Positions 8,260 through 34,588 of a stretch of 64,000 nucleotides of DNA are shown in pieces. Source of the DNA: Oculina patagonica (lineage: Eukaryota); NCBI RefSeq assembly GCF_052425735.1, contig NC_135763.1:14260001-14324000 (forward strand). Reading direction: 5' to 3'. The first letter of the stretch is position 1; every line of letters starts with the position of its first letter. The notes under the pieces were generated by a model, which saw only the letters and a list, made by a program, of their open reading frames with translations, was not told the origin of the DNA and did no database searches. The translations under genes and the position numbers were made by a program.

Positions 8260-8699
8260 ATCCCACCTAGATCCCACTTATATATCCTGCCAGATCACAG
8301 CTCTTTTGCTTGGGATCTCAGAAATAGTTTTTGTACTACTTGCTTGGAATCCAGGCTTATATCCTACAAATCCCACCACAGATCCTGAATGTCTCACCCA
8401 GGATCCCAACATTTCCCCCTGTGATCTCAGCTGCCCCTCCCGTGATCCCAACTTTCCTGCACAGAATCCCTACTGTCCCACCTGGGATCCCGACTTTCCC
8501 ACCAGAGATCCCTACTGGCTTGCCCGGGATCCCAACTGTCCCAGCTGGGATTCGTACTGTCCCACCCGGGATCCCAATTGTCCCACCCGGGATCCCAATT
8601 GTCCCACCTGGGATCCCGGCTATCCCACCTGGGATCCCACCTTTCCCGCCCGGGATCCCACCTATCCCGCCCGGGATCCCAGATTAATTTTTACATGGG
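8260..8699. repeat. About 21-bp tandem repeat (CCCACCCGGGATCCCAACTGT) ending in a probable EnSpm-like terminus
   Basis: About 20 units built on the GGGATCCC palindrome, more homogeneous toward the right. Ends ...AATTTTTACATGGG. Confidence 0.8.
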
Positions 8700-8739
8700 A
8701 ACCAGCAGAATATGTAAAATCAGCTCCTTAAAACACCTT

Positions 8740-9270
8740 TGCAATGTCTTGGAAAAGGTGACAGGTGCATTGCTCAATCCGAATGGCATCCTATTGTATT
8801 CATAGAGATCAAATGGGGTGATAAATGCGGTCTTGTGCCTGCAGGGTCCATATCCACCTGGTTAAATCCACTGGCTAGATCCACGGTACTGAACCACTTG
8901 GTGTTGTTGTCGACTTCATTCAAGCTCTCCTCCATTTTTAACAAAGGAAAGGCATCTCGCACTGTTTTTGCATTCAGGCTCAAATAGTCAGTGCATAGCC
9001 TCATGGAACCATCTTTCTTTGGAATAATAACTGGAGAAGCATAGAGGCTGTGACATTCTGAAGCGATTCCATTTTCTACCAGGTTCTGTATGTGGTCTTT
9101 CACCTCTTGATATTGGGTTGGTGGTATTCTCCTAAATGGCTGAGAAACCAGAACATCATCAGTGGTAGGGATCTTGTGCTGGTAGGTTTCAGTATAATCA
9201 AGATTGTCACCTTCCTGGACAAAGACATGGCATGCTTCACCAGGAGCTGCCTTGACTGTTGTTTCACTAC
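8740..9270 (-). pseudogene. Gypsy LTR retrotransposon reverse transcriptase N-terminal remnant
   Basis: SQPFRRIPP...EVKDHIQNLVENG...YASPVIIPKKDGSMRLCTDYLSLNAKTVRDAFPL...[14 protein letters not shown]. Confidence 0.9.
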
Positions 9271-9899
9271 TGGGGAACATTGAATGTCTTTGAGGTTCGA
9301 GTTCATTGCCAGTAACGTGTGGGCTTAACTCTCGCATAACAATCTCTTCTTTGTTCTGTTTGGGGTAATTTTTTCTCTTGCTTATGTCCCACTTTTTTGT
9401 CCTTCATGGCGTTCTTAAAATTCTTCCATGTGTCATCTTTGCTCGCCATTTTAAACGACTGCAAAGGATGGTTGCTCATGCACAACCGCAAGTCGTTCCG
9501 GTCTATGGCAATGATAGGCCTTGCAAAGTTTTGCTTTCATACTCTATTTTGCATTTCATTGCATTTTTTTTTTTTCATTTAGTTTTCGGTTCAATAATTT
9601 TCTAAGCAAAAAAAAAAACTGAAACTATTGGTATTTTCTTATTATGTAATTTTATTTTTGAACTACTTTTTACAATTCGATACCAATTTTTTATGGCAAT
9701 CTAAGGCAATAGATTAATAATAGACAAGGTACCATCTTCGTGATAACCACAAAGACAAGTACCAGCCACTGTAACAGACTGGCTTCCTGTGTACTGTGAA
9801 GGAATACTTCAGCTTGTCGTTGCCATAATAAACATAACATGAAAAATCATGCAAAAATGACTGTCTGCTGTCCGCCTCAAGACACGCTCTATGGATGAT

Positions 9900-10010
9900 C
9901 ACTTTCTACTAACTGCTTCTTCAGCCATTCGTTTAACAGATCCACCAGTGCCATCGCAGGGCCTCTTCTTGTGGCCAGCTTCTAAGTAATCCCATTCCAT
10001 TCCATTCTAC
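9900..10010 (-). pseudogene. Sola2-like transposase fragment
   Basis: MEWDYLEAGHKKRPCDGTGGSVKRMAEEAV matches the W.YFEAGHGKGPCDG.GG.VKR motif. Confidence 0.6.
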
Positions 10011-10539
10011 AATGCCCTAGTTATTCGACATAAGGACTCTTGTTTGGCGTGAAAAACTGTGGTATTGTGTTATTGGCGTGTGCTGCTAGGCGATGTGGTA
10101 TATCTGAGATGATAATTGGTGGAGGAAATTTCAAAGAACCTAGCTACTCCACAAAGTTGTTTGGACTTTCCCCTCATAATACAAACATGATGCTGTCAAC
10201 CACCATGTGTGGACATGATTTTGATTCCCATCCACTCCTAGATATTACAACCAAAAATAAAGTTGTTCTCCCTTAAAATACTATTCTTATTATCTTTATT
10301 CATCAGTAAACACTACTATTTCCGATATGCAAAGGAAATAAGCAGCAGGTACGGCACACAATTCATTGTAGGCCTTGTGGTTTATTACTCTAGCTTTTTA
10401 TATGGTTTCCTTTCCTATACAAAAAAAAACCCTTCAGAAATAATTCCAGTGACCATGGTTTTAGTACTTTCACTGTAACTAAAGAATTGTCTTTTTCTTA
10501 AGTACATTGGAAAAAAAGAAAACTTATTATCAGCTGCAA

Positions 10540-11250
10540 GTATTGCCAACTAATGGTGGTCTGTCGCATTTAATGTGTTGGGGTCTGTAATGTAAGTGAG
10601 TGGATTGCTGTCTGTCGAGACACGAAAGTAGTGATCATACAAGTAATCTTTAAACTTCTCTGTGACTGCCCACTTTAGTGCCAGGATTTCGCAGTGATAT
10701 GCCAAGTAGCGTTTCTCAGCCTCATTGACTGTACGACTTCCATAGGCGATTACTCGTTTTGTGCCTTCCTGAACCTGGTACAGAGCTGCACCATGACCAT
10801 CCTCAGAGGCATCCGTTTGTAGCATGAATGGCAGAGTAAAGTCTGGATAAGCAAGAATTGGTGGGGATGTCGATCTTTTCCACACAGATGAAAACATGGC
10901 CCATAGCAGATATTGGTCCCCTGTACCCTTGGAACATTCATCCTTGAAATGCTTCACCATGTTTGTTCCCCAAAAAATTGAAATTGGAATATTCCTTTTA
11001 CTGTTATTTTGTTTTTGGGAGCGCTTTGGTTTTATTCCATATCAGGGAAAATCACAGCCATTGTCTTGTGACTGCCCTTTACGCCAGACTCTTCACTAGG
11101 GAACTTCAAATCAATGGTCCAATGGTCAAAAGAGATTGTCTTTCACTTCTCGCGCCATGTAACCCATCTTGACACCATATCCAAAAGTGCTTTACACTGT
11201 TTTCCATCGGCGTACGCATTACACTCTTTCCCTTCTCCTACCAGGGATGT
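10540..11250 (-). pseudogene. Gypsy pol remnant (protease, RT end, RNase H; internally deleted)
   Basis: CKALLD protease-like motif at about 11190. SPPILAYPDFTLPFMLQTDASEDGHGAALYQ...VIAYGSR...EILALKWAVTEKFKDYLY...TDSNPL. Confidence 0.9.
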
Positions 11251-11499
11251 TAAAACACCTGGAGTTGTTTGGGGACTGGTGTTAATCCCAGCTCAGCTCG
11301 TTCCTTTTCCACTGTTCTTTGCCAAAATTCTCTTAGTCATCCTCTTTTTCTTTCCCCGCTTAGTGCCCGATCAAAGGGACTGTAGAAATAGAACTGTAAC
11401 CAGGATTAGACATGTATTAAAAAGGTAAAATGTTCTCTGGTGAAAAGGTTTAAAAACAAGCTTTCGGGTATCAGACTTTAGCCTTTAACAAATGAAAAT

Positions 11500-11760
11500 G
11501 TTAGTGCAAAGTGCCATGAAGAAATTTTCGGCTCTTGTCAACATTTACCCATTCTCAGGTCACATATAGCTAACAGAAATTTGGCATTGGATTGTCCCAT
11601 AACCTGGGTAAGCTCAAAGCTGTGAGGAATTGAAGCCGCAAAAACTGACGATAGAAACATAATACTGCCCTTGTCAAATGTGTTTGGGACGGGTTGCAGT
11701 TGCAGAAACTCCCCCAAAAGAATAAGTTGTTTCCTGCAAAGGGAAGTTGACAGCGACAAG
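11500..11760 (-). pseudogene. PIF1-family helicase fragment (TE-derived)
   Basis: KQLILLGEFLQLQPVP (motif III), FELTQVMGQS (motif IV), LRMGKC. Confidence 0.75.
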
Positions 11761-12099
11761 TTTAAAGATTCTTTGACAAAAAATACTTACCTTGAACGAA
11801 ATGATTACGTCAACAGATATCACTCTGCAGATTTTGCCCAAACTGCTATCAGGCCAGAAGTATAATTCTAGGCAAGGAGTAAGGGCACGTGCTCACTTCA
11901 TGACACTCTTTGGTGGCATGAAAATAAGCTTTCGATTCTTGGCAGAGCCTTTTTTCGCCATGATGAATGTACTCCCTTTTCATTTTGCCAACAATCACCA
12001 GGTCGAGAGGCAGCTGAGTTACAGCTGCAGAGTTAAAAAGCTTTTGGTTGCACCCATATTTGGTATTTATAGACCATGGTGTCGCAGCAGTTCATTGAG

Positions 12100-12330
12100 G
12101 TTGGCACGAAGGCTCCTGATGACAAAAATGGCATTTTGGAGGAAGTGCTACAGGTTTTTTTGAGTTGGAGCAGGTTGAGGACCATGAGACATGCCCTCTG
12201 ATGGCGTAGTAATTGCTGTTGAAGTAGGCGATGTGTTCTCCACTACATAGGTTTTCTTCCTTATGGGGCCACCTTTTCTCCTGCCTGTTGCTTTTTCTGC
12301 AGATTATTTCCCTTTCTTTTTGGCGTGTCT
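12100..12330 (-). pseudogene. MuDR-like transposase C-terminal remnant (paralog of about 17540-17760)
   Basis: Clear nucleotide homology to 17540-17760, the segment just downstream of a SWIM finger. Confidence 0.5.
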
Positions 12331-12379
12331 AATAAGTTAGACACGCCAAAAACGTTAAGTTAAAAAGGCGGCCCAGGGC

Positions 12380-12800
12380 TAATGTGGACCTTTTCAACAT
12401 TTCTAGCAATAAATAAACAAATAAATAAGTAAACCAAAACATAAATGAATAAATAGAACGTACAATAATATTTACAGAAAAAAAAGATAAAAATATATAC
12501 AAGTTAAAAACGAATTATTTGATTATACGCAAGTTAAGATATTTGCCCTGGCAAAATAAATGATTTCCATTTTCCCTATTTTTTCCTTATCATGTTTTTA
12601 GTGGTCCTAGTTTGTAAACTAATACTCTTTTACTTAGCTGCTTCGCAATCAGCTGCAAAATATTTTATAAGCACAATACTAATTTGACACTCTTTGTTAC
12701 TGTTGTCAAATTTAGAATGCTTAGCGGGTATCATTGGGATTAAAAACAAAGATACAGAACCACTATTTTGATAAAAAGCATACAAATATTTGAAGTATAT
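12380..12800 (-). repeat. AT-rich dispersed repeat with an unidentified ORF remnant (second copy at about 18076-18500)
   Basis: Both copies begin AATGTGGACCTTT and encode QNSGSV.LFLIP..PAK...FDNSNKEC.I.IVLI.YFAADCEA. Confidence 0.7.
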
Positions 12801-12939
12801 TAGGGCTGGGTCGCACCAGCATAAAAAGCTGTTTATTCTACCAAAAAATCTGTCATCATGTAGGTTTTGCTGGTCTGTCTCATTTGTCAACCAATTAAAA
12901 AAAAAAAGCGGAATGTACCAAATGTTCAAAGATACCGCC

Positions 12940-13340
12940 ACTTAAAATTGCCAAGCCCTGGACTTCGCCAAAAATGTCACAAAACGTTAGAAAAGCTATT
13001 TAATGTAAATGGCGCTTCCATAACATCTTGGGCTGCTTTGATCATGGTACTTTTCTCTACACCGAAGTTAGCGCCTATGGCTAAATATGAGTTTCCATGT
13101 GCGAAACAGTAAAGTCCAAGAGCAAGTACCTTCTCTGGGGGAATACAATTGTGCAAAGCGGTGTTTTGTTTCAAAAGAAATGGATGTAGCAGATTGAGAA
13201 GTGCATCAAAGGTATCTCTTGTCCTTCCAAGTACTGGGTAGGAATTGCCCGATTCCTAAAGTGTATTTCAAACCATGATCCATTTGGTCGCTGCAAATGC
13301 CACCAATTCGGATTGTGTAGTCTTCAAGTCTTTGCTGTCT
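12940..13340 (-). pseudogene. PIF/Harbinger transposase N-terminal remnant
   Basis: KQNTALHNCIPPEKVLALGLYCFAHGNSYLAIGANFGVEKSTMIKAAQDVMEA (Harbinger HTH region). Confidence 0.85.
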
Positions 13341-13559
13341 ACGTTGCCTCATTTGGTGCTCATAATTCAACAATGCCAGCCGAATGTTCAGGTTGTGCAG
13401 ATACATTGCATATTTAATATGCTAGCCATTCTTGCCTAGATGCAGGTTAAAAAGGCTAAAATCCCAAGGAAAGCGAAAGCTTTGTGTTGCAGTTCCATGT
13501 TTTTGTTCACGTGATAGCGTGACTCGATTTTAGCTTGAGCGCGAATTAAATATTGTCCT

Positions 13560-15260
13560 GTTGACAAGGGGACTGTTTGCTTACAATAAAACTCGAAAAT
13601 GGTTGCCACATCAGTTTCCCAATATTTAGCAGTAAGATTAACTGTAACTACAAACATGCCTCTACGTGTATAGGTAACAAAATCACAGGTTTTGAAACCT
13701 GAAACAGCCATGCAAGTCTGAACTTGAAAATAATGTATGTGATTTTCATCAAAAAAAAAAAAATACTTCCCTTCCTTATCTTTTTTTCCACTAATGCTGG
13801 GTAGCAGGAATGCAATTTTTTGGTCATTGCCTTTCCATGTAAATGGGCATTTAAACTCTACCACTAAAGGTTCACAACACTGACATTTTCTTACGCCATC
13901 TAAACTAGCTCCTATCCAGGAATATTGTCTACTTATGAGGAGGCCTGGCTCTCCAAGCTCAAATAAAGAGTGTTGTTTTCACTTACTTTTGAGTAGTAAA
14001 ATTTAGCATTGTTCTCTTCTTTTATCCCATATTGTATGGCTTCAGCATACACCTTGTTTTCTTCAAATTCTGTTTGGTCATGCAGTGGAATTTTTTACAG
14101 CGATAAATACATCAGTGAGAGGATTCTTTCTAAAGTTTTTTTGCCTTGTATACAGTGATTTAATTTTTTTACCGGTAAGTAGAAGGTGTCTCATCTCGTG
14201 CCAGGTTTTGTTCTTGTGTTGTCCCATAGTAGCCTGATTGATTTCCATTATGTCATTGACTGAAAATGTCAAGGCTTTCAGAAATTCTTCAGCACAATTA
14301 AACGGATTGTTTTCTGAAAGCTTATCAATATTTGCCCTGACATAGTCTTTAGCTTGGGATGATACATACAGATGTGAAATATTGTGTTCAGACTATGTTT
14401 TCAATATCATCAAAGTCATTTGAAGATGGTACAAAATGAAGAATACCAGAGCAGGGATCTATTTTTCTGAGTTTGTTTGCAAAGTCAATTTTTTCTTTCA
14501 TAGTTGTTCCCTCTCTATGTTTCATGGGCCTGGCATCAAATGAATCAACCCATGATTCATCACAGGGGGTCACTTTTCTTTTCTTCTTCTTTACAGTGCT
14601 GTGGAAATTTTTCATTTCTGGGACTGGTTTGTGGGTAGGTGCTGGTTTAGGGTTCAAATTAGCAGACATATCTAATTCAAACAAAGTTGCAACTTAATGT
14701 CTGCATCCTTCATCTGCTCCACCCTTTGCTCCTGCAGAATACAGAGTTCACTTACCTATTTGAATCAAGGACAAACCAGAGCCTGTAAAGCTTTCCGCCT
14801 TCTTTGGGTTTTTTCCTTCTGTGTGGGTATGACCCCAGCTAGACACAAAAAACCTACTGTCATCAAGGTCTTGTACAGATTTAAATCTAAGGCTCCTAAT
14901 ATGGCCATTTAAGCACAGATTATACTCATTAAATGAGCGCCAGGATGACAGCATGCCTTTGTCATAATCTGTTTTACTCATAATTAAATGTTTAAAAATG
15001 CCCAATAGTCCAAATGGAGGTAGTTGTGAAAAATCATTGGACAACGATGTCATTTGAAAAGGATCAGGGATGTTTTGTCGAGCTGGTAAAGTAAGGCGTC
15101 TTAGTAAACATGTATCAATGGAATCATTTTCAAAGTCAGGGTAAGTTGGAAGGTTCATACTAGCAACAGTTTTGGCTAACTGAATAAATTCAGATTTTCG
15201 GTAAGTGATGACTTGAACACCCATAGCAAAAATATGTCTTTTAGTTTCTTTCACATCCTT
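13560..15260 (-). pseudogene. SWIM plus YqaJ (lambda-exonuclease-like) protein remnant, ISL2EU-type accessory ORF
   Basis: SWIM-like CRSKGGADEGCRH, then GQHKNKTWHEMRHLLLTG, AIQYG, GLLIS..YSWIGASLDG, VEFKCPF and HYFQVQTCMAVSGFKTCDFVTYT. Frameshifted. Confidence 0.85.
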
Positions 15261-15269
15261 GTTGTCAAA

Positions 15270-15720
15270 TTCATGATCAGCTGTAGTAGTGGCCTGTTTT
15301 GAAGATGGTTGCCTCATTGCTGTAGGTTTATTTGTAGATGTGAGAGAACTGGTCAAAAGAAGATGCAGATGGTTGCTTAGCAGAAATTAGAGTTGTAGCT
15401 GGGGCTGGTTTTTAACAAGAGATGGTTGCTTGGCGACAGCAACTCAAGTAGCAGGAGCCGGCTGTTTTACAGAAGATGAGGCTGGTAGTCGCTTGGCAGC
15501 AGTCGGTTTAGCAGCTGGGCTGGTTGTTTGTCAGAAGATGGTTGCTTAGTACATGTACCTCCAACTGGTTGATTATCAGGAGATGGCTGCTTGGTAGTTC
15601 TGATTGGTTGTTTAACAGATTGTTGCTTGGCAGGTAAAGGTTCAGTAGCTGTGGCTAGCTGTTTATCAGATGTTTGCTTAGCAGTAATAACTTTTCCTGA
15701 TTGAGATGGCTTTTTAACCT
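15270..15720 (-). repeat. Degenerate coding-type tandem repeat (GATGGTTGCTTGGC-like; KQPSS motifs)
   Basis: Repeated AGATGG(T/C)TGCTT motif, giving a low-complexity Ser/Thr/Pro/Gln translation on the minus strand. Confidence 0.55.
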
Positions 15721-15779
15721 TTGTTTCAATATATAAGGATGATGCTTTTGTATTGGTAGAAGATGGAAAGGTGGCTTGA

Positions 15780-15930
15780 CATCGTTGATTTCGTTATTGG
15801 TCATGCACAAGGGCCAACAGACTTTCAATATTTCCCTGAGGCATTTGTTAAGAAAGCTGTCAAGCTTTTTTTTTATCCGCCTTGTCATTCTTCATGTCTT
15901 GCATCCATACAACAGGGCAGCTATGAAATT
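15780..15930 (-). pseudogene. RTE-clade LINE ORF C-terminal fragment
   Basis: ALLYGCKT*RMTRRIKKKLDSFLNKCLREILKVCWP...TNNE. Confidence 0.75.
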
Positions 15931-17499
15931 TGACTTGTCATGGTCTGTCAATGAAAATTGCAATTTGATGGCAAAAATAAGTATTCACCAAACATTCCAC
16001 TTGTACTTGCGTGCCTTTCGTCTGTGGATATTTGCAACATGGAGTCTGAGCCTGTGATTCTTTCAATTGCTACGCTTCTCGTTTTAATAATCAATCTCAC
16101 AGGACACTTGCCGTTTTTTACACTTGTAACAGGAAAAAAAAATCAACAATTACCCCCCTGCTCCATTGCAATGTTGTGTACCTTGAACAAACAATACCTT
16201 CCGTTGCCGTCTATTTTGCAACAGCGGCTTAGGGGGAAGGGGGTTTTTCATTTCTGGGAATTCCCAACAGAATGGCAGGTTATAATGGTTGAAATTAGTG
16301 TCCCAAAGAATTATGGCACGGATGGTAGATAAATCGTGTTGCAGATGTATTTTCTTCATAAGAGAAGACAGCAGGAGTGGATGACTGCTCTCCTTGTTTT
16401 AATGTCTTGTTATATATCATGTTTCGTGCTGGGTTATCCTGTACTAAACATAACTTGTCTTATACCCACTCACAGTGCGTTCCTTGGAATTCCTTGTAAC
16501 AAAGCATCTTTGGCAATTTGCTTTAATAGTTTCGTCTTTCCCCAATTCTTTCATTGCTGTTTTGACCATTTTCTCCTTCTCTTCCTTCTACCTTTGCTGG
16601 ATCAACAACTCAACTCTTCTTCCTTCTCTATGGATAAAAAGCAAAAAAGCCTCGTCTGAAATATGAAGCTATCTACGTACTCTTTACTGTCTATAAAAGG
16701 GGGTGCATTTGAGAAACAACTTCAGGGAAGTGTTGACGTCCAACGTTAGCAACAATCTTGGCTTTTCAATGGTGTTTTTTAACGATGAGAAATGCATGGT
16801 AATGAGATGATGTTTATAAAGGCATGCAACTGACTCTCCTGGTCAACCCTCAACATATAATCGATAAAATTGTTTTTCTGATTCGAAAAGCCTAGTGTTG
16901 AATCTCCCCATTTCAAGGATTCCATAAAGTCTACATGAGTCAAAATAATATGCAGAGGGTGTGGCAAACCGTCTGTGAAAGCTGCTCAAACAGTTCCAGT
17001 CCCAAGGACTGCCATTTTCTTCAAAACATGTGAAAACCAGCCAATCCATCATCTCCATTGGGAAAGAAAATTGGTCTTCATTTTCCTTGACAGTGTTTGA
17101 TCACACAACGTTCAGACATCAGCAGTTAGTCTGGATAGAAGTTTACTACCTGTAAAAACTCTGGTCCCCTGACTCTTGAATTGCCACCTAGATCAAACCT
17201 GCGAACCCTGCGAACAGTGAATAACAGCAGCTAGCAAGGTCAATCCTTGTGTGGCAGGTGGGTGTGTATGCTGGAATAAGTTAGAAGGCATATGCCTCTG
17301 ACCCTATGTCCACACCGATTTCTCTTTATCCAAGTGTCGCTGCCAAACAGTGTATTTTTAAAACTCTTGTTTCTTTAAAATGTATCAGAAGCGCATCACC
17401 ATCAACCCCATTAAAAAACTCCCATGCTTCCTTTTTTAAGGTCGTCTGACTTATTCACTCAAAGCCATCCACTGTGGTTAGCCACAGTGGACGGTTTGA

Positions 17500-17930
17500 T
17501 TTCGAAAAGAAAAATGTAGGATTGTTTCATGGAAAATGTAAAAATCGCCATCTGGAGGAAGTGCTTCCAGATTTTTGAGTTGGAGCAGTTTGAGGACCAC
17601 GAGACATGCTCTTCTAAGTTTGTAGTAATTGCTGTTGTTGAAGTAGGCGATGTGTTCTCCACTACATAGGTTTTCTTCCTTATGGGGCCACCTTTTCTCC
17701 TACCTGTCGCTTTTTCTTCAGTTTATTTTCCTAAACTTTTTGGCATGTCTAGTAAGGCAAGTGATGTGGCATCTGCCTTGGCCCCTATGGCAACTTTGCT
17801 TAAAAACGTGTGAGTCTCCTCGGATACTTCAGCTGCTGCCAAAGTGTGGTGACAGAATTTGTAAGTGGCCCAATTCACACAAGAGGTGTCACAGACAAAC
17901 TTCCAAATTCCCCTGTGAATCACTTAACGG
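17500..17930 (-). pseudogene. MuDR-like transposase C-terminus with SWIM zinc finger
   Basis: VCDTSCVNWATYKFCHHTLAAAE (SWIM CxxxC..CxH), followed by LALLDMPKSLGK. Confidence 0.6.
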
Positions 17931-18075
17931 GGATTATTAGTCCATGACTTGCTGGCTACATAGTAAACACTCATTGAATACGTGAATTTCGCTCGCTGCG
18001 CTGGTGACGATTTGCAGACTCTTAAAATATTCCTTCAGTTTTTGGAAAGGGATATGAACAACAACAACTTAATTT

Positions 18076-18500
18076 AATGTGGACCTTTATTAAAACATTT
18101 CTAGCGATAAATGAGCAAATAAATAAATAAGTAAACCAAAACAAATGAATAAGTAGAACGTACGATAATATTTACAAAAAATAGTTAAAAATAAATACAA
18201 GTTGAAAACTAATTATTACATAAGAAGATATTTGCCCTGGCGAAAAAAATGATTGTCGTTTTCCCTAAATTTTTTTCTTACCATAATCATGTTTTTTAGT
18301 GCGTTTATTTTGTAAACTTTATATATACTCTTTTTCTTATCTGCTTCGCAATCAGCTGCAAAATATTCTATAAGCACAATATCAATATGGCACTCTTTGT
18401 TACTGTTGTCAAAATTATAATATTTAGCAGGTGTTATTGGGATTAAAAACAAGCATACGGAACCACTATTTTGAAAAAACATTCAAATTTTTGAGGTGTA
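18076..18500 (-). repeat. Second copy of the AT-rich repeat at 12380-12800
   Basis: Direct nucleotide and translated homology. Confidence 0.7.
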
Positions 18501-19069
18501 TTAAAAATTAGAACAAACTTTGATGTGCATTGAGCAGATAGAAAAACAAAGTAAGAAATAATTATTATTTGACTGAATCGTTATCAATACAACATGTATG
18601 GCATTCAATTAAAAGTTTTTGTTTGTTGAAGTCAACGTTGTTTAATTTGTACATTCATTTTCCTTTTGCTTATATTTGCCGTTGCATAACGATTTTTTCA
18701 CTCCTGCTCCAAAGTTTCCTCTGCTTGTAGGGGGCAATGTTTCAATACGCAACCTGTTAAAGCGTGTCACCCTCGCTCCCTCCATTTATTGAGCACAGCC
18801 ACCAGCAGCAAGGCCAAATCTAATAGTTTACCACATCAAAATCAATTTTTCTGCGTTTCAGACTACAATTAATCCACATGACTCGATAAACAACCTAAAA
18901 ACAGCCATAAAAACAATCCTTGAAATCATCTGTGAGGCTAAGTGAAGAAAGTAGTTGACTATTCCCAGAGAGTAATTTGTTGTACTGCAAAATTAGTGAT
19001 GTTTCAATGTTATCTTCTTAGACTTGGTTTTGTCGATTGTTAAATTCTGGAGAAGTGAAAAAACTTTCA

Positions 19070-19620
19070 GATGCCAACGGGCCTAGAGTACAGTTAAATC
19101 TTTTAACTAAACCCTCAGTCTGTGGGTGATAACTGGACGTGTTTACATTGTGAATTTGAAAAAAAAACTTGCAAACTTCAGCTAGTAGTTTTGATATAAG
19201 GTTCTTTCCTCTATAAGAAAGCAGCACTTTTGGAGCACCATGCCTAGCAATGATTTCGTCAACAAACAGGCGAGCAATAACAGTAGCTTCAGCATCGGGA
19301 ACTGCAAATGATTCGCACCAAATGGAAGGTAATGGCTAAAAACAACAATGCACCTATTACCCTTCCTTTACGGTGGAAATGGGCCTGAAATATCAACAGC
19401 TACCCTTTCGAATGCATTGCTGACAGAAATACGAAATAATGGTGGTCTCTTATAGAGATCCTTCGTGGTCTCCTTATTGAGCAATCCTGACAAGACTCAC
19501 AGCAGTGCTCAACGTCTTTAAAGATGCCTTTCCACAAGTACCTTCGCTTAGCCTTCTGAAAAGTTTTGTGAACTCCGAAATGATCACCAGAAACATGATC
19601 ATGGACCTAAGATAAGACTT
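19070..19620 (-). pseudogene. Gypsy integrase remnant (HHCC plus rve core)
   Basis: HDHVSGDHFGVHKTFQK...YLWKGIFKDVEHC, RLFVDEIIARHGAPKVLLS.RGKN, SSYHPQTEGLVKRFN. Confidence 0.85.
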
Positions 19621-20234
19621 TTAATTTTAAAGCCTGAGGAATCACTCTTTCTGTCGCAAGGATAATGACAAATTTCTAGAGGATGCACGAGAAGATTTGT
19701 GGCTTGTGTTGGAGATTTTGCTTGTTTTGGTCGACCGTGATGTAGTTGAGCCTTTCAATTTATGTTTTTGTTCAATGGATTTAATTCGTTCGCTCGCCAT
19801 TTTACGAGTTTCGTTATTTTAGCAAGAAATAACTTCCAATTCTTCGTACATGAGTTTTCTTTCTTCTTTGCCTTCGATTACAAAATCTTATGCTTCGTGT
19901 CACTCTAAGAACTGTGTCATTTTCTGTCTAGATGTAGATCAAGGAAATCTTATGAATGCAAGAGTACTACCTGATTTATGGGCACAAGTGATGTTTTGAA
20001 AGTTCTCAAAATTGCACAAGCCCTCTTATTCTCAGTTGTTAGAAGCTGCAAGCATACTGGTCTGCTAATCTGTTTTCAAATGTTTTTTTTTTATCTCACT
20101 CAGCCTTAGTGTATAACATTCAGATTTACAGACCTTGGTGAACTGCATTGTCCTTGAGTCATGTTAAGTACCCCATTTCTTCTTTACTAAACTGACTTTG
20201 TTTACCTTATAAAAATGATAGTATATGTTAACTG

Positions 20235-20510
20235 TCACAACTTTTGCAGGGAAGTAATCTTGAATGTCAAACCCTTTGTCCGCATGACATCACCAGGGTG
20301 TAAGTAACAGTCAATAGCATGAGACATTTTTTTTAACTCTCTGTCACTAATGCTTCCAGTGTACAGCTCACTTAAGAAAACCAGAGCTCTAATGGAGAAA
20401 AGACCTACAAGGCCTTTCATAGTTGCTGTGCCCAGTTCAACTCCCAGAACCCAGACATGTGAGCTGCTGCTGGGGTCCACTTGACTCCTCTCTTTTGCAA
20501 TTCTTGGCAA
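20235..20510 (-). pseudogene. ISL2EU/IS5-like (DDE_Tnp_4) transposase fragment
   Basis: TMKGLVG...FLSELYTGSISDREL...LHPGDVM..KG. Confidence 0.8.
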
Positions 20511-20519
20511 ATCTCTACG

Positions 20520-21850
20520 TGGTTTCAGCCATTGATGGCTTCGTTGAGTTCAGGTTCTGCGCCAGCAAAGTTAGTGACTCTATCTGATCTTATCGAAAGG
20601 CCATAATGCAATCGCACGATTAACAGGGTTGCCTCTTCTAGCACTTCTGTGATTAGTGTTCCTGTCTTTGGAAAGGCTTCCTGGGACCTCACCCAGTAGC
20701 AAAAAGGCGCTAGCCAAGTAGCGTAAAGCTGCAATTTTAACTAAGAACTGTAGCGCAATATCATCTTGTAAACAACCTGAATGAGCTCTAAGGTGAGGGC
20801 TTATAGTCCTGATTGAATGAGTATGTGCTTCACTTCGAACTTCAAGATCGTCATGTAAAAAAATTTGCCAACCTCGGGTTTGGGCCAGTTATTCTCCAAT
20901 TGCCACAGATACTCCGGTCCTTTCCAACAGCGATATTGATTTGATAACTTTTGAAACTTTAAATCGTGCAAAGCATCGTCAGCTTGGCTCAATTTCCTAC
21001 GACATTGCCTCCATTCAGCAATTCTGTTAGCTACGTAGGTGTTGAAATACTTTTTTATTCTAAATGTACTGTAACGAAGTCTGAGAATCGGTCCAGAATA
21101 CCACTCTGTTAATCATGTAGGTTAATGTAGCATTAAACTCGACAAATCTTGGCAGATAGCAATGCAGCTTGAGATTAAAATAGCTCTCACCTTTGATTAA
21201 GAAACAAGCACTAAACCATCTATATAAACGAACCGAAAAAAGGAGCACATACCCTAACCTTCTTTTGATACAGCTGAGAATTGGTGGACAGAGATTTCCT
21301 TTTCTTCTCTTTGAAGCTGGAGAGAGCATCTTGGTATTTGAACTTGCAGCAAAGCTGCAGTGGTAACTCAGACTTCAAACGTTCCCAGTGGGCCTGCTCA
21401 AATTCTGGGACAGGGTCGCCCCAACCCAACTGTTATTTCCACAGCTGCTGCATGGTCTTCTTTGCTTCTAGCACAGCTGGACAGACAAAACACACAGGAT
21501 CGTCAAGGGAACTGATAGTTGACAGGACACCTCGCTTGTTTGTCTGGCTTTACGAATTTAAACTGGACCACATCTGTCGCGATAGTCCACAGGACTCCCA
21601 GTGCTCTTTCGAACCTCAACTGATCCAGAATTACCCAGGTTGAGAGTTGGCTGTGCCCGTTTATCTGCAGGTGTGTTGGCTAACATTCCATGACAATTAC
21701 TTGTCCACAGCCCTCAGAAAACTGTTCCTCCCCGTCCTTAGTTCATATTTGTCACTCTCTTTCTTCTGAAGACTTAGTAGCTTCTGGTTATTGCATCGTC
21801 AGCACAGCACCAGGAAGTAATTTTTTTGTCATTTAAATCCCATTTCCTCC
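20520..21850 (-). pseudogene. Old BEL/Pao pol remnant (RT, RNase H, integrase pieces)
   Basis: WGDPVPEFEQAHWERL, VVFWTDSQTSLQYI, WKGPEYLWQLENNWP, IRSDRVTNFAGAEPELNEA. Confidence 0.85.
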
Positions 21851-22474
21851 AGGTAATTTCTTGTAACACTCAGGTGAAAAATGAATGTGGCAAATGAGAG
21901 AATGTGGCAACTGCTCTACAAAATTGGCTCTTTTCAACTGCAGAAGACTTAATTACTGTTGCCTCAAATATGTGTCGTTTGGTAACTTATGCATAGTATT
22001 CCCTGTCTCGTTCCAGTCACTACAAAACTGAGCAACACAACGCTTACAATTTTGAAGAATTAAAAAAATTCTGATTGAAACTACGCACACATATGCTTAC
22101 AAGACTGCATAGAGATTCCACCTGTGACTCACAGGCAAGATGGTCAACGTTTCGAATTTTAGGGAGCTTCCTCAATGTGAAAACAGTCTTAGATGAAAAA
22201 ATAAATACACATTCCACATAAGTGATACATGTATTTAATAACTGTGTTACACCAAAAAGTTGCATTTTGGGGTTTACATGCCCTTAAACGACTAACTGTT
22301 TCATAGCTACATTCTGCAGCATGTATGTAGAGATGCTCTGGTCTTTCTTAGTCCCCATAACTATCAGTAACTGACTCACTTTGTTGAAATACTTGTCTAT
22401 TGGATCATGGTGTAGAATGAATTTGATGTGACAGTGGTTCCAGGCAGTGCTTTTCAAGTAAGTGCCAGCTGTGT

Positions 22475-23010
22475 CTAGTTCTTTGTAGCTTCATGGTGGC
22501 TACTTTGAACTACTGCTTGGAAGTATGGAATCACTTCTGGAAAAGATACTGAAATCACAATGTCATTTGACGGATAAATCATCCAGTCTGTTACTGTTAT
22601 AGGCCGACTAGTTCTTGGTATGCCAGTCGTGAGATATGCTTGAATTGTTATTACAGCTGATGCAGCTTCATCATCATGAGAAACAGGCTGGCTTAGATCA
22701 CCCCTCGAAAGTAGATGATCATCAGCGATATTCAGAATTTTGATTTTAATTTCCTGAAAATTGGTTCGGCCATAAGATTCTTCATGGTAAATCCATTTCA
22801 CTTTGAAGGGTGTGCTGTCCTTGAGTGTTTCATTGTATCTTTGTTGAAAAGTGCAGATCCAACGATGAATTCGATCTGGTGGTGCAGGGATGAGGTGCAA
22901 TGTGAAGATGGCCTGTAAACTTCCAAGCTGATTGACTCAAACTTTAGAGCTTTCTTTTTTTCTGATTTCTCTTTATCACTAATGATATACTTTGCTTTGA
23001 TCTCCTCCAT
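22475..23010 (-). pseudogene. Unidentified coding remnant, possibly LINE ORF1 N-terminus
   Basis: 141-aa ORF with VITIQAYLTTG, reminiscent of CR1/L2 ORF1 N-termini. Weak. Confidence 0.3.
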
Positions 23011-23081
23011 TCTGAAGAATTAAACCCAAAGAAAGAGAGAGCAAAAGTGAAAAACGAAAGCAATTATGGACACATAAGGCA

Positions 23082-24516
23082 GAGTTTCCCTAATGGTCGC
23101 GGGTCGCGGGTCGCGGGTTTCAAGTCGCGTGTCGCGGGTTTTAAATAAGTCGCGGGTTTTGAAAAAGTCGCGGGTTTTGAAAAAAGTCGCGTGTTTTTAA
23201 AAAGTTGCGAGTTTTCAATAGAATGCATTTATTTCTCAGTAGAATTCATTCAAACAAATTTAAACCGGTTGCAAAGACGCCGGTTTTAAAATGATCGCGT
23301 TTTCTTAGGAACTACGTTACGAAGTAACGTTGCGAGTTAGACAATCAAATTGCGAACTTCGGATCAAACTTCCCAAACTTTGCCGACTGAACTTCTGAAC
23401 TTCCCAAGTTTGCAAGTTGAGGAGGAACGAGACACGTTACAAAGTGGTGGCAGAAATATTTCAGCGATTCTAACTGCTCGAGTTTCAAAATAGTTGTTTG
23501 AACAAGCACGGCGTCGGTATCAACGTTCTGACCCACAGTAAGTATAAGGATTACATATACCGTCCGTTGCATCACGTCCTGACATAAAAAAAACATGTTC
23601 AAATTGGGTATCAAACATTGCATGATTTGCAATCAAGCTTTTAAGTTTGAAAACAACGTTGCGCGCGAGCGATCATGAAGTTGAACCAAAGTATTCATGA
23701 TTGAACGCGTACGGTTCATAAATATATTTTACTAGTATTCTGTGGCAAAAACTCTTTAAAATATTTTTAACTGGCGCAGATTTTAAAAAACCCTTTTGTA
23801 GTTATGTTGACAGAAATGGTTTTGCTTCACTAAACCATCGGAAGAAAACACGTACCATAAAAATAGAATTGAGCCGTAAACGTGTCGCGACTTTTATAAA
23901 TTCAAATTTGTCTGACTCTTTCGCATTTGTATAAAATTAATTTTACGTGAAGATCGGTAAAGCCGTACAGTTTCATTCAGTTTACAAACGCAGAAGAGTT
24001 GACATTGAAGTTAAAGCCTCACAAAAATTTTAAAGATGTATTTGCTGTATATAAAAAGTTAAATTTGACCAAATTTCAGCCGACGTAAAATTTATTTATC
24101 GCAGATCGCTCATGCGAAACGACGTCAGACTCTTCAACTTCAACCAAATATTTTGTAACTCTAGCCACTGGAATCGCTGGAACGTTACCGCTGCTGCCAT
24201 GTTTTCTTCACCTGAATTTCCGACATGAACACGACTTTCGAGCAATATGTCTTGTTCCTCCTCAACTTGCAAACTTGGGAAGTTTAGCCGGACCAAAGTT
24301 GGGGAGTTTGTTCCGAAGTTCGTAATTTGATTGTTTAACCCGCAAAGTAATTGGCTTCTTTGTAACGTAGTTCCCCCCAAAAAAAAAAACACGCAATTTT
24401 TTAAAAACACGCGACTTTTTTCAAAACCCGCGACTTTTTCAAAACCCGCGACTTTAAAACCCGCGACACGCGACTTGAAACCCGCGACCCGCGACACGCG
24501 ACCATTAGGGAAACTC
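23082..24516. mobile_element. Non-autonomous MuDR/Mutator (foldback-like) element
   Basis: TIR GAGTTTCCCTAATGGTCGCG...CGCGACCATTAGGGAAACTC with internal GTCGCGG tandem repeats. Imperfect inverted homology for about 400 bp. Perfect 9-bp TSD CATAAGGCA. Confidence 0.9.
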
Positions 24517-26379
24517 CATAAGGCACGTCTGTTGCATGCTATGTTGCCTAATGATAATAACGATTAGCAAACACAGTGATCCACACTAAAAGTCGACTCT
24601 CTGAAGTACAGTGAGAACGGCTTGTAAAGATTTAGTCCATGAATTTGAATGTTGCTTGCTTCAATTCCGTTGCTGTATTGTTAAATTTGTCTACTGAATA
24701 CCAGTGAGAGTTTGTGTAACCACCATGTGCGATGACTTGGCATAGTGAATACCTTTTACTTTTTTCCTGCATTGTTGTGAAGTAACAGTGATTTGTTCAC
24801 CAGAATAAGGCCAAAAGAAGCCCAAAAAGCACTGTCTACACTTTCAGATCCAGATGTGAAGTCCTTGCGAGGGACAATAAGGGGGAGGCTTATCAGGTTC
24901 TGCACCATGGTACTTCCCTTTAGTGTGTTGTAAAGGCAACTTGAATGAATTTATTGAAATGTACTTTTGGTGTCCCTAATTGTTCTCAATTTAAAATTAC
25001 TTATCCTGAACTATATCAGTGACGGGAACATTTTGGCGGGTAAGGTCTTCTGTTGTTGCCCTTATCATAAAAAAATACTATAACAGAACTCTTCCGACCA
25101 ATGCAAGCTACGGTTTCAACCCCAAAAAATCTTTAGCATCCCCATTTGTTGCCACTTTTCCAGCAACAAATCTTCTTTTTCCTGATGGCGATGAGCCAGG
25201 TGCAGACTGGTTTTTGTCTTTCATAAAGAGCCAAACTTTAATGCCTTCCTCTAGATTCTAATTCTGGTGTGCTTCCAGTTTTGATGCATTTTCTCCCATC
25301 AGCTAGTCCATCATGAGCATATCAGCCAGGGCTAACACTGTGTTCAACATACAGTTCAGACCAGTAGTGTGCCCTTGCTTGATTGACTATGATAAATTAA
25401 CCCAGTAAGTTTGTATTTCCCTTGGAACACATCAAACCCTTGGTCAACTTGGTGAAGCATCAGCCTTAAAAAGTTCAAATATAATACGTTTTGTAATTGT
25501 TTTTATAGTTGTAGTTCAAAGTGTGGGTTTATTGCATTTTTACATCATTTCCAACTTGAAAGACATGATCACATGTGCCTGCAAGACAGGAGTATCCACT
25601 ACTCATAGCTTGTCGTTTAAAGTTTTTTTTTTACTAAACTTACAGACATTTTTTGATGTATTTGATGTAAGGGATTAATGTGGTCTTTAGGAATTGTTTT
25701 AACCACTATTATTTTCAAAGTTCTGCTACATTGCTTCCTAATTGTGAATTTGTGCCCACTGAATTTTGAACATTTCCTTGACACTGATGTGTTAAAGCTA
25801 AAGAATTTTCGTTCCTCTTGGCCCATGTAGTAATTTAATAAATGCATACTGCGCTTTAAGACTACATTGGTTACCAAGTCTATAGTATATGCGACCATTA
25901 CATGTTTCATTTTGTAGCAACAACCACAAAGCCATCTTACTCAATCTCATGGTATTTACCACTGCAATATTGAGAGTCCATACAGATTTTAAGGCTCATA
26001 GTGCTTTGGTCTGTTGTGTGTGTGTTGGTGAAGGTGATAAAAACTCCGGATTTCTGTTATAACAAATTAAAAAGGCATCTTGATGACAGGAGTTTTAAAC
26101 ATTGTTTAAACCTTAACATATGAATTAAATAACAATGAAACTTGTGGCTGGTCATGACTAGTTGACTGTTGTTTAGTTGTAGTATTACCATTCAAACTAA
26201 GGGTTTTAAGCAGCTCTCTTATTTTTCTTAATGCACTTGGTTTGGTTGCAAATGATATTAGTATACTTTCAGAAAGCTTCTGAAGCAAGTAGCTACACTT
26301 AAACCATTATACACTCTTTGTTAGTGTTTACTTGTTTTAATTATCTGCTGGTTTGGGAGCAACAAATTCATCTGTGCCA

Positions 26380-27560
26380 GGGCTGCAAAATTGCCTAATT
26401 TCCTGAAAGAGATAATTTGTGTGCGTTCTATCAAGGCCATTTGGCAAATAGTCGAGGGAAGCGGTAATGCTGATGTCTTATTGGAAACATATTTAAGGAT
26501 TTGGTATTCTGTCTCCCAGGAATCGACATATTCATGACAAAGAACTACAACTGGGTGTTTTTTAGAGAATCTAAAATGATGGTATTTGCCAGGAATTTAC
26601 TTGAAACAATGTTCAAAATGAGAGACCCAATCATACACTGGCACCATGCCACGACAGTGCCGTCATGAAAACCGCACAGTTAAGACACATTTACACCTGT
26701 GACAGTCGTGCTGTCAACACACTGCATCAGGTCAAACAGGGAGGACACAGGTTCGTCTGAAGGACTGCTTGGGCAGACCAAAACTCCAATCAGGACTAAA
26801 TTTTGTGTGTCCAGCAATTAAAAAAAAAATATGTATTAAGAATAGATTGGTGGAACCACACAATACCCACCAGCAATAGTACCAAATGACATAATTACTT
26901 TTGTTTTGTCTGTCACAGTTGTCTGCATAAATGTGCACGTCTGTTTTTCCAGCACCCTAAATAGTAAAGAAATCATGAACATAGCTAATAGTGGCATTGG
27001 CCCCTTCGCCCATCATTACTGCTTCGTCAATTAGGCAGTACCTGTTGAGCATAATCATAAGAGTAATGAACCCTTCCTCTAAATGAGCACGCCTGCTGTT
27101 GTTTCAGGAGATCAACATCAGTGTTTTCAAAAGTCTCCTTGCAACAATTTACCGAATCCTTGTAGAAGTCCCTCTCCTTCATAGCCTTAGTAATGTGTCC
27201 ATTTTGTTGTTCAAGTAAACTTTTCTTCTCCACTTTACTGACGTTGGCATTTCTGAATATCTTAGTGTTATTCATGCACTTGGCAAGTGATGCAAAGGTC
27301 AGTCGCTGGAGTCATAAATATAAAATTAACCTTCTCTTGAAAAAAGTTGGTCCTTGAGCGTTGCATACCAGATGAAGTTTTCGTCTGACTGTGAATCGTA
27401 GTCATAATCACGAGATGAAGTTCAGCTGATGAACATCGAATGCACTGCGCTCGATGTTCTATGATATCTTGAAAATCTAGTGATTTACTGCAAGGTCCTC
27501 TGTTTCTACCGTAAGTAAACACCCATAGTCACGCTCTTGAAATGTCTTCGTCTAGGAATG
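26380..27560 (-). pseudogene. Sola1-like transposase remnant
   Basis: FMTPATDLCITCQ, HYSYDYAQQV, HIYADNCDRQNKSN, FLIAGHTKFSPDWSFG. Confidence 0.8.
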
Positions 27561-30500
27561 ATGACTCGATCGAAGAGGGACCTTTTCAGTGGTATCTATT
27601 TGGTATCTGTTTGTTCTAGGTCAAATTCATTATCACTGGACTCTGAGGCTACCAACCGCCACATTCGCGGGATTTTAGTCATATCCTGTACGCAAATGTG
27701 TAGGTCTTTTTCCTGTTCACACACTAGTTGGAACGTGATTTATACTCTTTAGTATAGGTATAAAGTAAGTTCCTTTATGTATCTTGTTCAAACTCCCATA
27801 GAGCACAACATACATAAACGCACTTTATAGATTTTTGAAGATATTCTTTGTTGTTTTAACAGCTATTTCCATTTTTATTATTACAATCTTGTAAATATTC
27901 TTGTAATTATATTTAATTAATGGTCAATCACGCCATGAGTTGAAATTGATGTGTGCTGAGATTATAGTGAAATTAATCTGGAGCAGAGGGGAATTTTGTG
28001 CCCTTTCCAAGTCACGTATCTTTAAACCAGCAGTAATTTCCTAAGCAAGTAATGCCTCTTTCTTTCCTCTGACGATCTTTTTGCTCTCTTTCTCTTTGTT
28101 CAACTTCTGGCTGTTCCTTTAGTCTCTTTTCATCCTCCTTTTTTTGCCTTTCTCTTTCCTCCTTTTGTAATCGTTCTTCTCATTATTGCCTCCAGCTTCA
28201 TCACTTCCTGTTTTTGGGCTTTCAGAAGTCTTCCACTTTCATTTCTTTCTCCTTCCCTTCTAACGCTCATCTTCGGCCTTCTTTGCATTTTGCGCTTTCA
28301 AAAGATTGAAGAGCCTCAGTAGACTTCCTCACGGTTTTCACTGTTGAGCCATGTTTCGATGCCTTGGCTTGAGTCTTTTTCAATTGATCTGTGGGTGGCT
28401 GTACCATTTTTAAGATTTTAGCCTGTGAATGAATGACTTGTGAATGACTGATAGTGAAGTATAGAACAATAATTTACTGATGAAGAATAGTCGGCAGCCT
28501 AATATAATAAGAAATCCATACAAACCAAGGACAGATATTGCCTATTGTACTTGAAATGACAATAATAATAATATAATGTTTATTGGAAACTCATTGCAGT
28601 AATAACTGAATTACAGAGTAAAATACAAGGTATAAATAAAATAGGGCCCCAATGGGTCCATGTGTTTTGCTGCTAGAGCAAAGTCTTAGGGAACATGTTG
28701 ATGAAAGACAAGTGAGTCGAGATTGAAATCCAACGTCTTTTATTGTCTGTCACTTGTGTGCAGGTTAATAATTGCACTATATTGTAGTCACTTTGTGTTA
28801 ATTCAATCCTGATAATTTTACTGATCAATGTTATGTTGAAATCAAAGACAGCAAACATAATTTAATTACTAGTAAGTTAACGTAATGTCTGACATGATTG
28901 TCTCTTTGATAAAAAACAGAAACTCTTAACATTATAAAAAAATCTCAATGAACTCAATGTGATTCTTTTAGTGGCGTTATCTCACTGGTTACCGTTAGTT
29001 GTATTTGGAATCATTGTCACAATGGTAGCGTTTTAACAACAACGAAAAAGACAGAATCTATTGACCTTATAAGAACTCAATGTGATATATTTATTAGTGA
29101 CAAGACAGTGGTTCTTTAACCACTTTCACCCAAATTAAACACTGGAACAACTAACTCTTAACAAACTTGTTGTGTCACCCTGAGTTAAATATGCAAAATT
29201 CAGAAATTATAAATAATCGCACGCGCACCGGCGTACAACAACAGAAAGACGGCGTTGAACGTAACGCAAAGTTCATTTTGAAAGCGAAAGTTTACAAATA
29301 ATTATTATCATTCGTCAGTCATCCCTTCACGCATGAACACTCGTCGAATTTCAGTGTCTTCACAACAAGATCGGAAGATCGATAAGGACCAATTTTTGAT
29401 TCTGCGAAAGTTCGTTTTCTTAAAGTTTTAGAAATTTGTGAAGTTGGAGGATTCACTGAGGACTGCGTAGCCGAAGATGCAGTGGCTCGCTGGACATCAA
29501 ATTCTATTTTTCCCGGCGTTTAATTAATCTTCACAAAATAAACATGTGGCGCCAGCCCGTCTGGCAGTCAAAAATTCATTTTTCAAAAAACTTTCCCTTT
29601 CCAGCTATTTTAGCGGGGCTTATACTATAGTACCTACCTGTCAGTCGTAGAAAAGCTGAAATTTAAGGATGAACTGTTTATTAAATGAAGACCGTATTAT
29701 TTTTTAATAACTAGTAAACAAACTGGTCGCCACGCATTTAAACACGAACTGACGAATGTTGCATCTGATGCAGTGAATCTGGTGAATGAGAACTTCCTTT
29801 AATATTTCTTTGTTTTCGACGGTGTGCACCACTGAATAAGTTTCTTTCCCATTGTGATGTTACTAGTATTAATTCGTTTCTAGCTGTCTTTTATATAGCT
29901 CGAATACATCTACAATTAGCGGTGCAGCCTACCAGCATGGTATATTCCTTTCCAGCTGTCTTTGCGTGACAAGTTACACGTTCATACATTTTATTTTAAA
30001 ATATGAATTTCAGAGTTAATACAGTACTAGTATGCTGTAGACAGTGTAGACAAGGTGAGGGTAAGTTTATTTTCAAAGCGAAAGTTTACAAACTGTGCAC
30101 TAACCGGTCCTTTGGAGAAAATATTTATGACCTTCGGCGAGGTTCCAAGTCTTCGCTCTTTTCGTAAATGATGAAAACTGCAGAATAATTTTCTCATAAA
30201 ACTGGAGTGGTCGCGCCACAGTTTGTTTTCTTTCCCAATGCGATATACTTTTAAATCGGTTTTCTGTTTTCCAACGTGTCCAACGTGGTTTGCGTTCGAA
30301 TACTTTGGCCCGTAACTTCGAATGCGATCAGCGCTACGGTTCATTGGTTTCGATTTTGTTTGTTCATGGATTTGATTGACATCGGTAGTTCAGATTTCTC
30401 CTCTGTTACGGCACTTACACCTTACGGCACTTACACCTTACACCTTACGGCACAAACTTCAGCTCTCAATGTGTTTTGCTTGCAGCCATTGCGGCTGCAG

Positions 30501-31868: not shown

Positions 31869-32030
31869 AACAATGTACCTATTACCCTTCTTTGACGGTG
31901 GAAACGGGCCTAAAACATCAACAGCTACCCTTTCGAGTGCATTGCGGACAGAAATAGAAAAATAACGGTGGTCTCTTAGAGTTCTTTGGTAATTTTCTAA
32001 TTAAGCAATCCTGACAAGACCACCAGTAGT
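31630..32030 (-). pseudogene. Gypsy integrase remnant, second copy
   Basis: ARLLVDEIIAKNGGSKVLLLYRGKD...TYHPENDGLI; homologous to 19070-19510. Confidence 0.8.
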
Positions 32031-33447: not shown

Positions 33448-33649
33448 ATATGAATAAATAAATAAATAAATAAATAAATAAATATCATTCGCCGTCTGTA
33501 AGATATAGCATTTTGAATTTCGGAGTTTCACGCCACACAAGACTTTAGATGGCCGCCAGAAAGCTGCCACGTTTTCTTAAAAAAAATTGCCTTATCCTGA
33601 CATTTTTAATACTCTGGACAATTTTTGACGGATAACTAGAGTACGGAAT

Positions 33650-34553: not shown

Positions 34554-34588
<35 letters not shown>

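Follow-up and report, generated by a model that had tools for sequence, protein, structure and literature searches.

Truncated transposable elements (TEs) are known to collect in TE graveyards, which occupy pericentric regions and gaps in gene clusters of many animal and plant genomes. Loci of a related appearance are the one-strand clusters of PIWI-interacting RNAs (piRNAs), of which Drosophila flamenco is an example; in the sea anemone Nematostella, whose piRNA clusters are described as enriched in truncated transposons, 402 of the 457 are single-stranded (PMC5731801). In this study, a 64-kb stretch of the Oculina patagonica genome (NC_135763.1:14,260,001-14,324,000; the window, numbered from its first base) was analysed together with 100 kb of flank on either side. 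A preliminary description of the window had reported, between 8740 and 28640 (the span), coding-core fragments from more than 10 TE superfamilies that were joined almost end to end and lacked their own termini. It had offered either fragment capture or deletion compaction as the cause, had likened the result to an array of acquired memory segments, and had proposed that the fragments be aligned to full-length relatives and the junctions inspected for microhomology. The present results suggest that the locus is an old island of transposons that owes its form to normal insertion, deletion and local duplication (rough probability 0.75), and a dedicated fragment-capture mechanism is unnecessary.

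The window sits in a TE-rich gap of about 100 kb (window coordinates of about -36 kb to +70 kb) that interrupts a tandem array of rhodopsin-type seven-transmembrane receptor genes, each with a single exon. The evidence combined Pfam searches on stop-free open reading frame (ORF) pieces (about 60, most of them without a match), DNA searches of the same genome, comparison with relatives of the fragments (L001-L018) and tblastn with the long ORFs of these relatives. The copy counts from the genome search are lower bounds (40 candidates were scored per query), and high-copy pieces may hide weak relatives of old fragments. Contigs of public sequencing runs were compared with positions 12000-17999 of the window only. 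For two unexplained ORFs, ESM Atlas gave no usable match.

Results

The span consisted of TE coding remnants (33%), non-coding repeat families (41%) and unassigned sequence (26%). The TE groups documented in it were Gypsy, BEL/Pao, Helitron, the PIF/Harbinger-ISL2EU type, a Mutator-like element with terminal inverted repeats (TIRs), and unclassified families resembling miniature inverted-repeat transposable elements (MITEs) or short interspersed nuclear elements (SINEs), which amounts to about five or six of the more than ten superfamilies first announced. The features are given below with their strand, and those without an assigned strand are marked unstranded (RT, reverse transcriptase; LTR, long terminal repeat; TSD, target-site duplication).

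8360-8695, unstranded: tandem repeat of about 16 units of 21 bp, just left of the span, which cuts off the Gypsy RT fragment
8700-9226, minus: Ty3/Gypsy fragment from protease into the RT N-terminus, 59-64% identical in protein to Gypsy pol L018 aa 343-519, without LTR
9482-9707, unstranded: solitary TIR of about 240 bp from a TIR family of about 1.4 kb, occurring elsewhere as inverted pairs
10553-11041, minus: Gypsy-type RNase H fragment (RT_RNaseH, E=3e-25)
11505-11873, minus: Helitron PIF1-helicase fragment alpha (L004 aa 139-245)
12124-12802, unstranded: repeat A, a direct repeat of A' (81-86% identity), ending exactly at the MITE B insertion point at TTA
12803-13566, minus: PIF/Harbinger-type MITE or deletion derivative B, with a 5' TIR (GGGCTGGGTCGCAC) at a TTA target in repeat A
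13567-15790, minus: internal 2.2-kb piece of family C, an element of about 5.7 kb seen in L001/L002
15934-16394, unstranded: family D, with halves 15934-16092 and 16326-16394 around element E, uninterrupted in L005 and L006
16102-16328, unstranded: element E, about 225 bp, complete, with at least 20 copies elsewhere that have the same ends
16418-16996, minus: Helitron PIF1-helicase fragment beta (L004 aa 352-646)
17540-18503, unstranded: repeat A', the second copy of A, with an extra segment of about 320 bp (17756-18075)
18896-19654, minus: chromovirus (Gypsy) integrase fragment, 74-80% identical in protein to L014 aa 126-314
19942-20167, unstranded: member of a palindromic MITE-like family with at least 10 copies elsewhere, here missing about 300 bp of its interior
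20259-20423, minus: IS5-like DDE_Tnp_4 transposase fragment (PIF/Harbinger-ISL2EU type), 42% identical to the family C transposase
20441-21707, minus: BEL/Pao pol fragment, from the Peptidase_A17 region into the integrase, collinear with the 4.9-kb LTR elements L011-L013
23082-24516, unstranded: complete non-autonomous Mutator-like TIR element of about 1.4 kb with a perfect 9-bp TSD (CATAAGGCA)
24867-25180, unstranded: complete high-copy SINE/MITE-like element of about 315 bp, with at least 37 copies (77-86% identity) that have the same ends
26501-28631, unstranded: copy 1 of a 2131-bp local direct repeat, 98.8% identical to copy 2 at 35210-37325

Truncated internal pieces of several unrelated TE groups are indeed present, as first described, and none of the coding pieces carries its own LTR or TIR at the locus. 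The extent of this mosaic had been overstated, given that coding remnants cover a third of the span and that 21708-28640 yielded no coding homology by Pfam on ORF pieces; the pieces are therefore not joined almost end to end. The reported lack of termini likewise applies to the coding pieces and not to the span, where the Mutator-like element has both TIRs and a TSD and MITE B has a TIR at its target.

The identity of the fragments to their nearest copies was 66-88%, and several had no DNA-level relative in the genome; for the Gypsy RNase H fragment, none was found. Judged by this divergence the fragments are old, and because of their age only conserved coding domains are recognisable by eye. 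The impression that coding cores had been retained thus stems largely from biased detection: non-coding repeat or unrecognisable sequence makes up two thirds of the span.

Alignment to full-length relatives revealed truncation together with clean losses in place. The BEL/Pao fragment represents 1.27 kb of a 4.9-kb LTR element whose relatives encode Peptidase_A17, rve and DUF5641 domains; it is without LTRs and has lost about 610 bp at 20593/20609, a stretch that is present in five other copies and lies within ORFs in L011. Relative to the continuous helicase ORF of L004, Helitron fragment alpha has lost about 700 bp at 11826 and fragment beta about 420 bp. The interior loss in the palindromic MITE is of the same kind, and MITE B lacks its final 130 bp or so, including the 3' TIR; the missing part was not found beyond family C. 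These deletions, each defined by comparison with relatives, directly support deletion-driven compaction, one of the two causes originally offered.

The junctions were blunt or overlapped by 1 bp. The closest abutments were those of A and B (12802/12803), of B and C (13566/13567, microhomology of at most 1 bp) and of the transposase piece and the BEL integrase (20423/20441). The last pair had been reported as an ISL2EU transposase fused directly to BEL integrase at about 20515; the two nearly abut, with a 17-bp gap, and the ISL2EU label is compatible with the Pfam match, as is PIF/Harbinger to the same degree. The scrambled order in the preliminary description was confirmed, since on the coding (minus) strand the Gypsy RNase H lies upstream of the RT start and the Helitron helicase pieces are permuted, with beta upstream of alpha.

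Moreover, marks of ordinary transposition were found. Full copies of MITE B elsewhere in the genome measure 752 bp, carry the TIR GGGCCGGGTCGCAC and are flanked by TTA/TAA duplications; the copy in the window contains a transposase remnant at 13013-13222. The insertion of element E into family D is a clear split-host nested insertion in which about 23 bp were replaced at the site. It is the sole clear case found, and it contradicts the statement that no element is split into matching halves. The TIRs of the Mutator-like element are near-perfect over 134 bp and continue, less well matched, to about 350 bp; its full-length copies number at least 35 (91-93% identity). Young complete DNA transposons also occur left of the span: a 1.85-kb family (1037-2882, with a further copy at about -1024 to 644; at least 15 copies, 92-97% identity) and a 712-bp family with 134-bp TIRs (3930-4641; at least 15 copies, 93-96%).

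The family C piece spans an alkaline-exonuclease/YqaJ-like gene, two unknown ORFs and the end of an OTU gene, and is without the DDE_Tnp_4 transposase and both TIRs. Full family C elements (L001:1-5685, L002) are about 5.7 kb long with TIRs of about 390 bp, and they carry an HTH_Tnp_4/DDE_Tnp_4 transposase on one strand and the alkaline-exonuclease/YqaJ-like gene, the two unknown ORFs and an OTU protease on the other, which makes them unusually gene-rich elements of the Harbinger/ISL2EU type. ISL2EU elements have an IS5/ISL2-like DDE transposase and a 2-bp TSD, and they often carry a YqaJ-type exonuclease gene as well. By gene content, the DDE_Tnp_4 piece and the family C gene set would fit ISL2EU or PIF/Harbinger alike.

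Each Helitron piece lies downstream of one copy of A/A' on the coding strand, and the two pieces cover complementary parts of the protein. This arrangement suggests a tandem Helitron pair or an old 5.4-kb duplication as its possible origin. The interpretation of A and A' as the LTRs of one retroelement was rejected: between them lie B, C, D, E and Helitron, which are unrelated families, and the repeat is not continued by any homology upstream.

The contigs of other coral runs bridged several of these junctions. Run X5, which is labelled as another organism and is about 99% identical, provided contigs for 12444-13195 across the A and B junction (6 differences in 751 positions), for 15113-16042 from the end of C into D (3 in 929), and for 16136-17150 across E, D and the Helitron piece (12 in 1015). 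Run X10, also with another organism label and about 96-97% identical, provided contigs for 12649-13211, for 13277-13703 across the B and C junction (3-4% differences) and for 15394-16166. No gain or loss of segments relative to these runs was seen in the 6 kb examined. Because contigs of other runs bridge the key junctions, the mosaic is judged not to be an assembly artefact, and by the same comparison it predates the divergence of the corals compared. Two runs that were guessed to be RNA yielded exact-match contigs among a few short ones of depth 2-3 and without strand information, at 12986-13202 and 16598-16768 in X21 and at 13944-14210, 15942-16141 and 16423-16610 in X19; they are too weak for a claim of transcription.

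A feature that the preliminary description had not mentioned is the orientation of the remnants. In tblastn with the ORFs of the relatives, every TE protein match in the window was on the minus strand, and the remnants extend well beyond the span:

8700-60954, minus: block in which each TE coding remnant detected has this strand
38307-40136, minus: Crypton recombinase (Phage_integrase, DUF3504)
46418-46939, minus: RT, a TE coding remnant in the right part of the block
54377-61257, minus: BEL/Pao element with 250-bp LTRs (DUF1759, DUF1758, RVT_1, Peptidase_A17)

After local duplicates were removed and each element was counted once, the minus strand carried 10 independent remnants and the plus strand none (p about 0.002, two-sided), the ten being Gypsy RT, Gypsy RNase H, Helitron, the B transposase remnant, the chromovirus integrase, the DDE_Tnp_4 piece, BEL/Pao, Crypton, RT and the LTR-bearing BEL/Pao element. 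Pieces related to the chromovirus integrase fragment at 31624-32034 and 41207-41455 have the same orientation. Thus, the random fragment orientation expected of a graveyard was not found over 8.7-60.9 kb. Left of the window, the TE ORFs were of mixed orientation. An excess of plus-strand ORFs in the left flank was considered as a second cluster arm and rejected, as it is due to receptor genes. Within the LTR-bearing BEL/Pao element, between the pol ORFs and a pol remnant (54845-55261), there is a tandem array of about 1 kb (56020-57010, period about 65 or 130 bp) with zero CpG.

The observed/expected CpG ratio was 0.54 in the span compared with about 0.9-1.0 in the receptor-gene flanks. Copies in the window were also depleted relative to their own relatives (BEL, 0.52 versus 0.85; Helitron, about 0.5 versus 0.93; Gypsy, 0.25 versus 0.68). 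For BEL the change was directional, with 20 sites that are CpG in the relative and TpG or CpA here, and 7 in reverse. This directional loss indicates that the locus has probably been subject to long-term germline methylation in place. In the 4 kb upstream (-1 to +3 kb) the ratio was about 1.7; this CpG-rich block was considered as a promoter island and rejected, as it consists of two copies of the young 1.85-kb TIR element. The young elements left of the span, the 712-bp family among them, have a ratio of about 1.7, which contrasts sharply with the adjacent depleted old fragments.

Local duplication contributed to the block as well. The 2131-bp repeat, for which no copies besides the two were found in the genome, lies within a larger duplication (26501-32036 versus 35210-41466, offset 8.7 kb). 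Its two copies were rejected as an LTR pair, given the lack of other genome copies and a homology that continues beyond them (30509-31868 versus 37335-41466). The identity of the larger duplication is uneven, at 98.8%, 96% and 90% in successive blocks; copy 1 contains a 1.9-kb insert, and the Crypton (about 37508-40283) belongs to copy 2, which is abutted by a 640-bp inverted repeat (32845-33484 versus 34563-35201, 98.6%). Fragments of a short-chain dehydrogenase gene (adh_short) form an inverted pair in the TE island, at 33150-33341 on the plus strand and 34706-34897 on the minus strand. They are similar to an ORF that lies some 96 kb past the right end of the window (L038:5796-6356).

The receptor genes near the window are almost all on the plus strand (for example at -39 kb, +72, +80 and +91 kb). 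The array has at least 18 single-exon 7tm_1 members of two subfamilies, at -97,000 to -59,000, -39,000, +72,000 to +135,000 and +148,000 to +158,000, and a P450 gene lies at about -53,000. In the left flank, at about -24,000 to -8,000 (L026:5900-L028:1800), there is a virus-like gene cluster. It encodes a packaging ATPase of the Pox_A32 type, a late transcription factor resembling VLTF3 and a phospholipase-A2-like domain, and it has two large ORFs, one of 681 aa and one of 1274 aa in which an Endonuclease VII motif was recognised. The cluster, which adjoins the TE island, may be an endogenous insert of Polinton-like or giant-virus-like origin.

Discussion

The history proposed here for the transposon island is one of ordinary transposition over a long period, in which old Gypsy, BEL/Pao, Helitron and Harbinger/ISL2EU-type elements would have inserted first. 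MITE, SINE-like and Mutator-like elements would have arrived later, some of them retaining their TIRs and TSDs. Deletions with blunt or 1-bp-microhomology ends, together with local duplications, would then have stripped termini and interiors, and the residue that can still be recognised would be the conserved coding domains. Moreover, the uniform minus orientation and the CpG depletion suggest that plus-strand germline transcription may long have crossed the block and filtered the insertions that survived. The most likely source of such transcription is a one-strand piRNA precursor, with a long host transcript as the alternative. Uniform orientation combined with CpG depletion is new here, and it fits a known kind of locus, the one-strand piRNA cluster.

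Several observations weigh against a history of simple insertion and decay. The permuted Helitron pieces beside A and A' require an extra duplication or tandem insertion, and random insertion followed by deletion does not predict remnants that are all on one strand (10 of 10). In addition, B and C, as well as the transposase piece and BEL, abut with no leftover halves from which a stepwise history of these junctions could be rebuilt, and 26% of the span is unassigned.

A reading that adds to this structural explanation, and is compatible with it, is that the block is a functional flamenco-like one-strand piRNA cluster, in which a plus-strand precursor over about 8-61 kb, antisense to the TEs, would give rise to TE-targeting piRNAs. 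The dense truncated TE fragments, with at least 10 coding remnants co-oriented and young insertions also present, are what such a cluster would contain, and both the CpG decay in place and the conservation of the locus in related corals agree with it. The few exact, low-depth contigs of the guessed RNA runs fall on unique old fragments; however, the RNA label of X19 and X21 is a guess, and short contigs of depth 2-3 could be DNA carry-over. Furthermore, the CpG-rich block upstream is made of young TIR transposons and is no promoter, and the co-orientation derives in part from local duplication. The cluster is accordingly putative, as the shared orientation fits it without proving it, and we regard it as a tentative candidate. 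It is similarly a possible, though not a probable, proposition that the 8.7-61 kb block is one of a set of conserved same-strand graveyards of O. patagonica that act as one-strand piRNA source loci, and the notion of the locus as a heritable record of past invaders deserves the same reserve.

The same asymmetry might have another source if a host gene on the plus strand had the block in one of its untranslated regions or long introns, as when a downstream receptor has a distant first exon; selection would there have removed sense insertions that disturb splicing or polyadenylation and left the antisense ones. Receptor genes stand on the plus strand on both sides (-39 kb; +72, +80 and +91 kb), all TE remnants are antisense to their direction, and the CpG depletion is similar to what gene-body methylation produces where DNA is transcribed. 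However, the receptor ORFs are single-exon and neither an upstream exon nor a spliced contig was seen; the antisense bias of intronic TEs is usually moderate and not 100%, and TE ORFs in the nearer left flank are mixed in orientation. This host-gene origin is therefore considered unlikely.

Active capture, with end joining or template switching placing pieces of TE complementary DNA (cDNA) or extrachromosomal DNA at double-strand breaks, would mean that the termini were never present at the locus. The internal fragments without termini, 0-17 bp apart, the microhomology of at most 1 bp between B and C, and the failure to find matching halves of B, C and BEL are all in keeping with it. Nevertheless, many fragments derive from DNA transposons, and template-switch capture of cDNA fails to explain the array because the Helitron, DDE-transposase, MITE and Mutator-like pieces cannot derive from cDNA; several elements, moreover, inserted with TIRs and TSDs. 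The left end of B is a proper TIR at a TTA target, and the later internal deletions within fragments indicate that deletion has been active here. Capture does not predict the uniform orientation, and regular spacers or repeats are absent; this reading is very improbable. Misjoining of repeats during assembly, which the repeat-rich region might invite, has a negligible chance of being correct, as independent contigs from several studies and other organism labels bridge the key junctions and most fragments are low-copy or unique in the genome.

A fragment-capturing array would have meant a new mechanism, and the evidence leads to ordinary insertion and deletion. The remaining value of the locus is that it is well delimited, conserved across species and CpG-depleted, with its remnants on one strand, which makes it a candidate for inclusion in what would be the first map of piRNA clusters in a stony coral. 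It further illustrates how detection bias and deletion together can produce coding cores that lack termini. If the putative piRNA function is true, heritable TE memory loci of the flamenco type would exist in stony corals, set within arrays of receptor genes. The comparison with acquired memory segments would correspond to a piRNA cluster, which the same-strand layout and the CpG depletion fit; regular separators or other signs of an active acquisition machine were not seen.

Among known systems, a CRISPR-like spacer array differs in its regular separators, of which none was found here, the repeats present being limited to A/A', the 2.1-kb duplication and TIRs. The filler-DNA or template-switch chimeras found at repaired double-strand breaks share with this locus short pieces without termini and little or no microhomology, whereas the present pieces include DNA transposons, bear normal marks of transposition and lost their interiors after arrival. 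The locus resembles a TE graveyard, a structure formed by nested insertion and deletion-biased decay: old truncated fragments of many families lie beside young complete elements, nested insertions, TSDs, internal deletions and CpG decay are present, and the arrangement is conserved in close relatives as neutral sequence would be. Unlike a graveyard, however, the locus has its coding remnants on one strand over about 52 kb, which neutral decay does not predict. With the one-strand piRNA clusters of Drosophila flamenco and of the Nematostella majority, the locus, a candidate cluster by its DNA layout, has in common tens of kilobases of truncated, co-oriented fragments of unrelated TE families, continued new insertions and persistence across related species.

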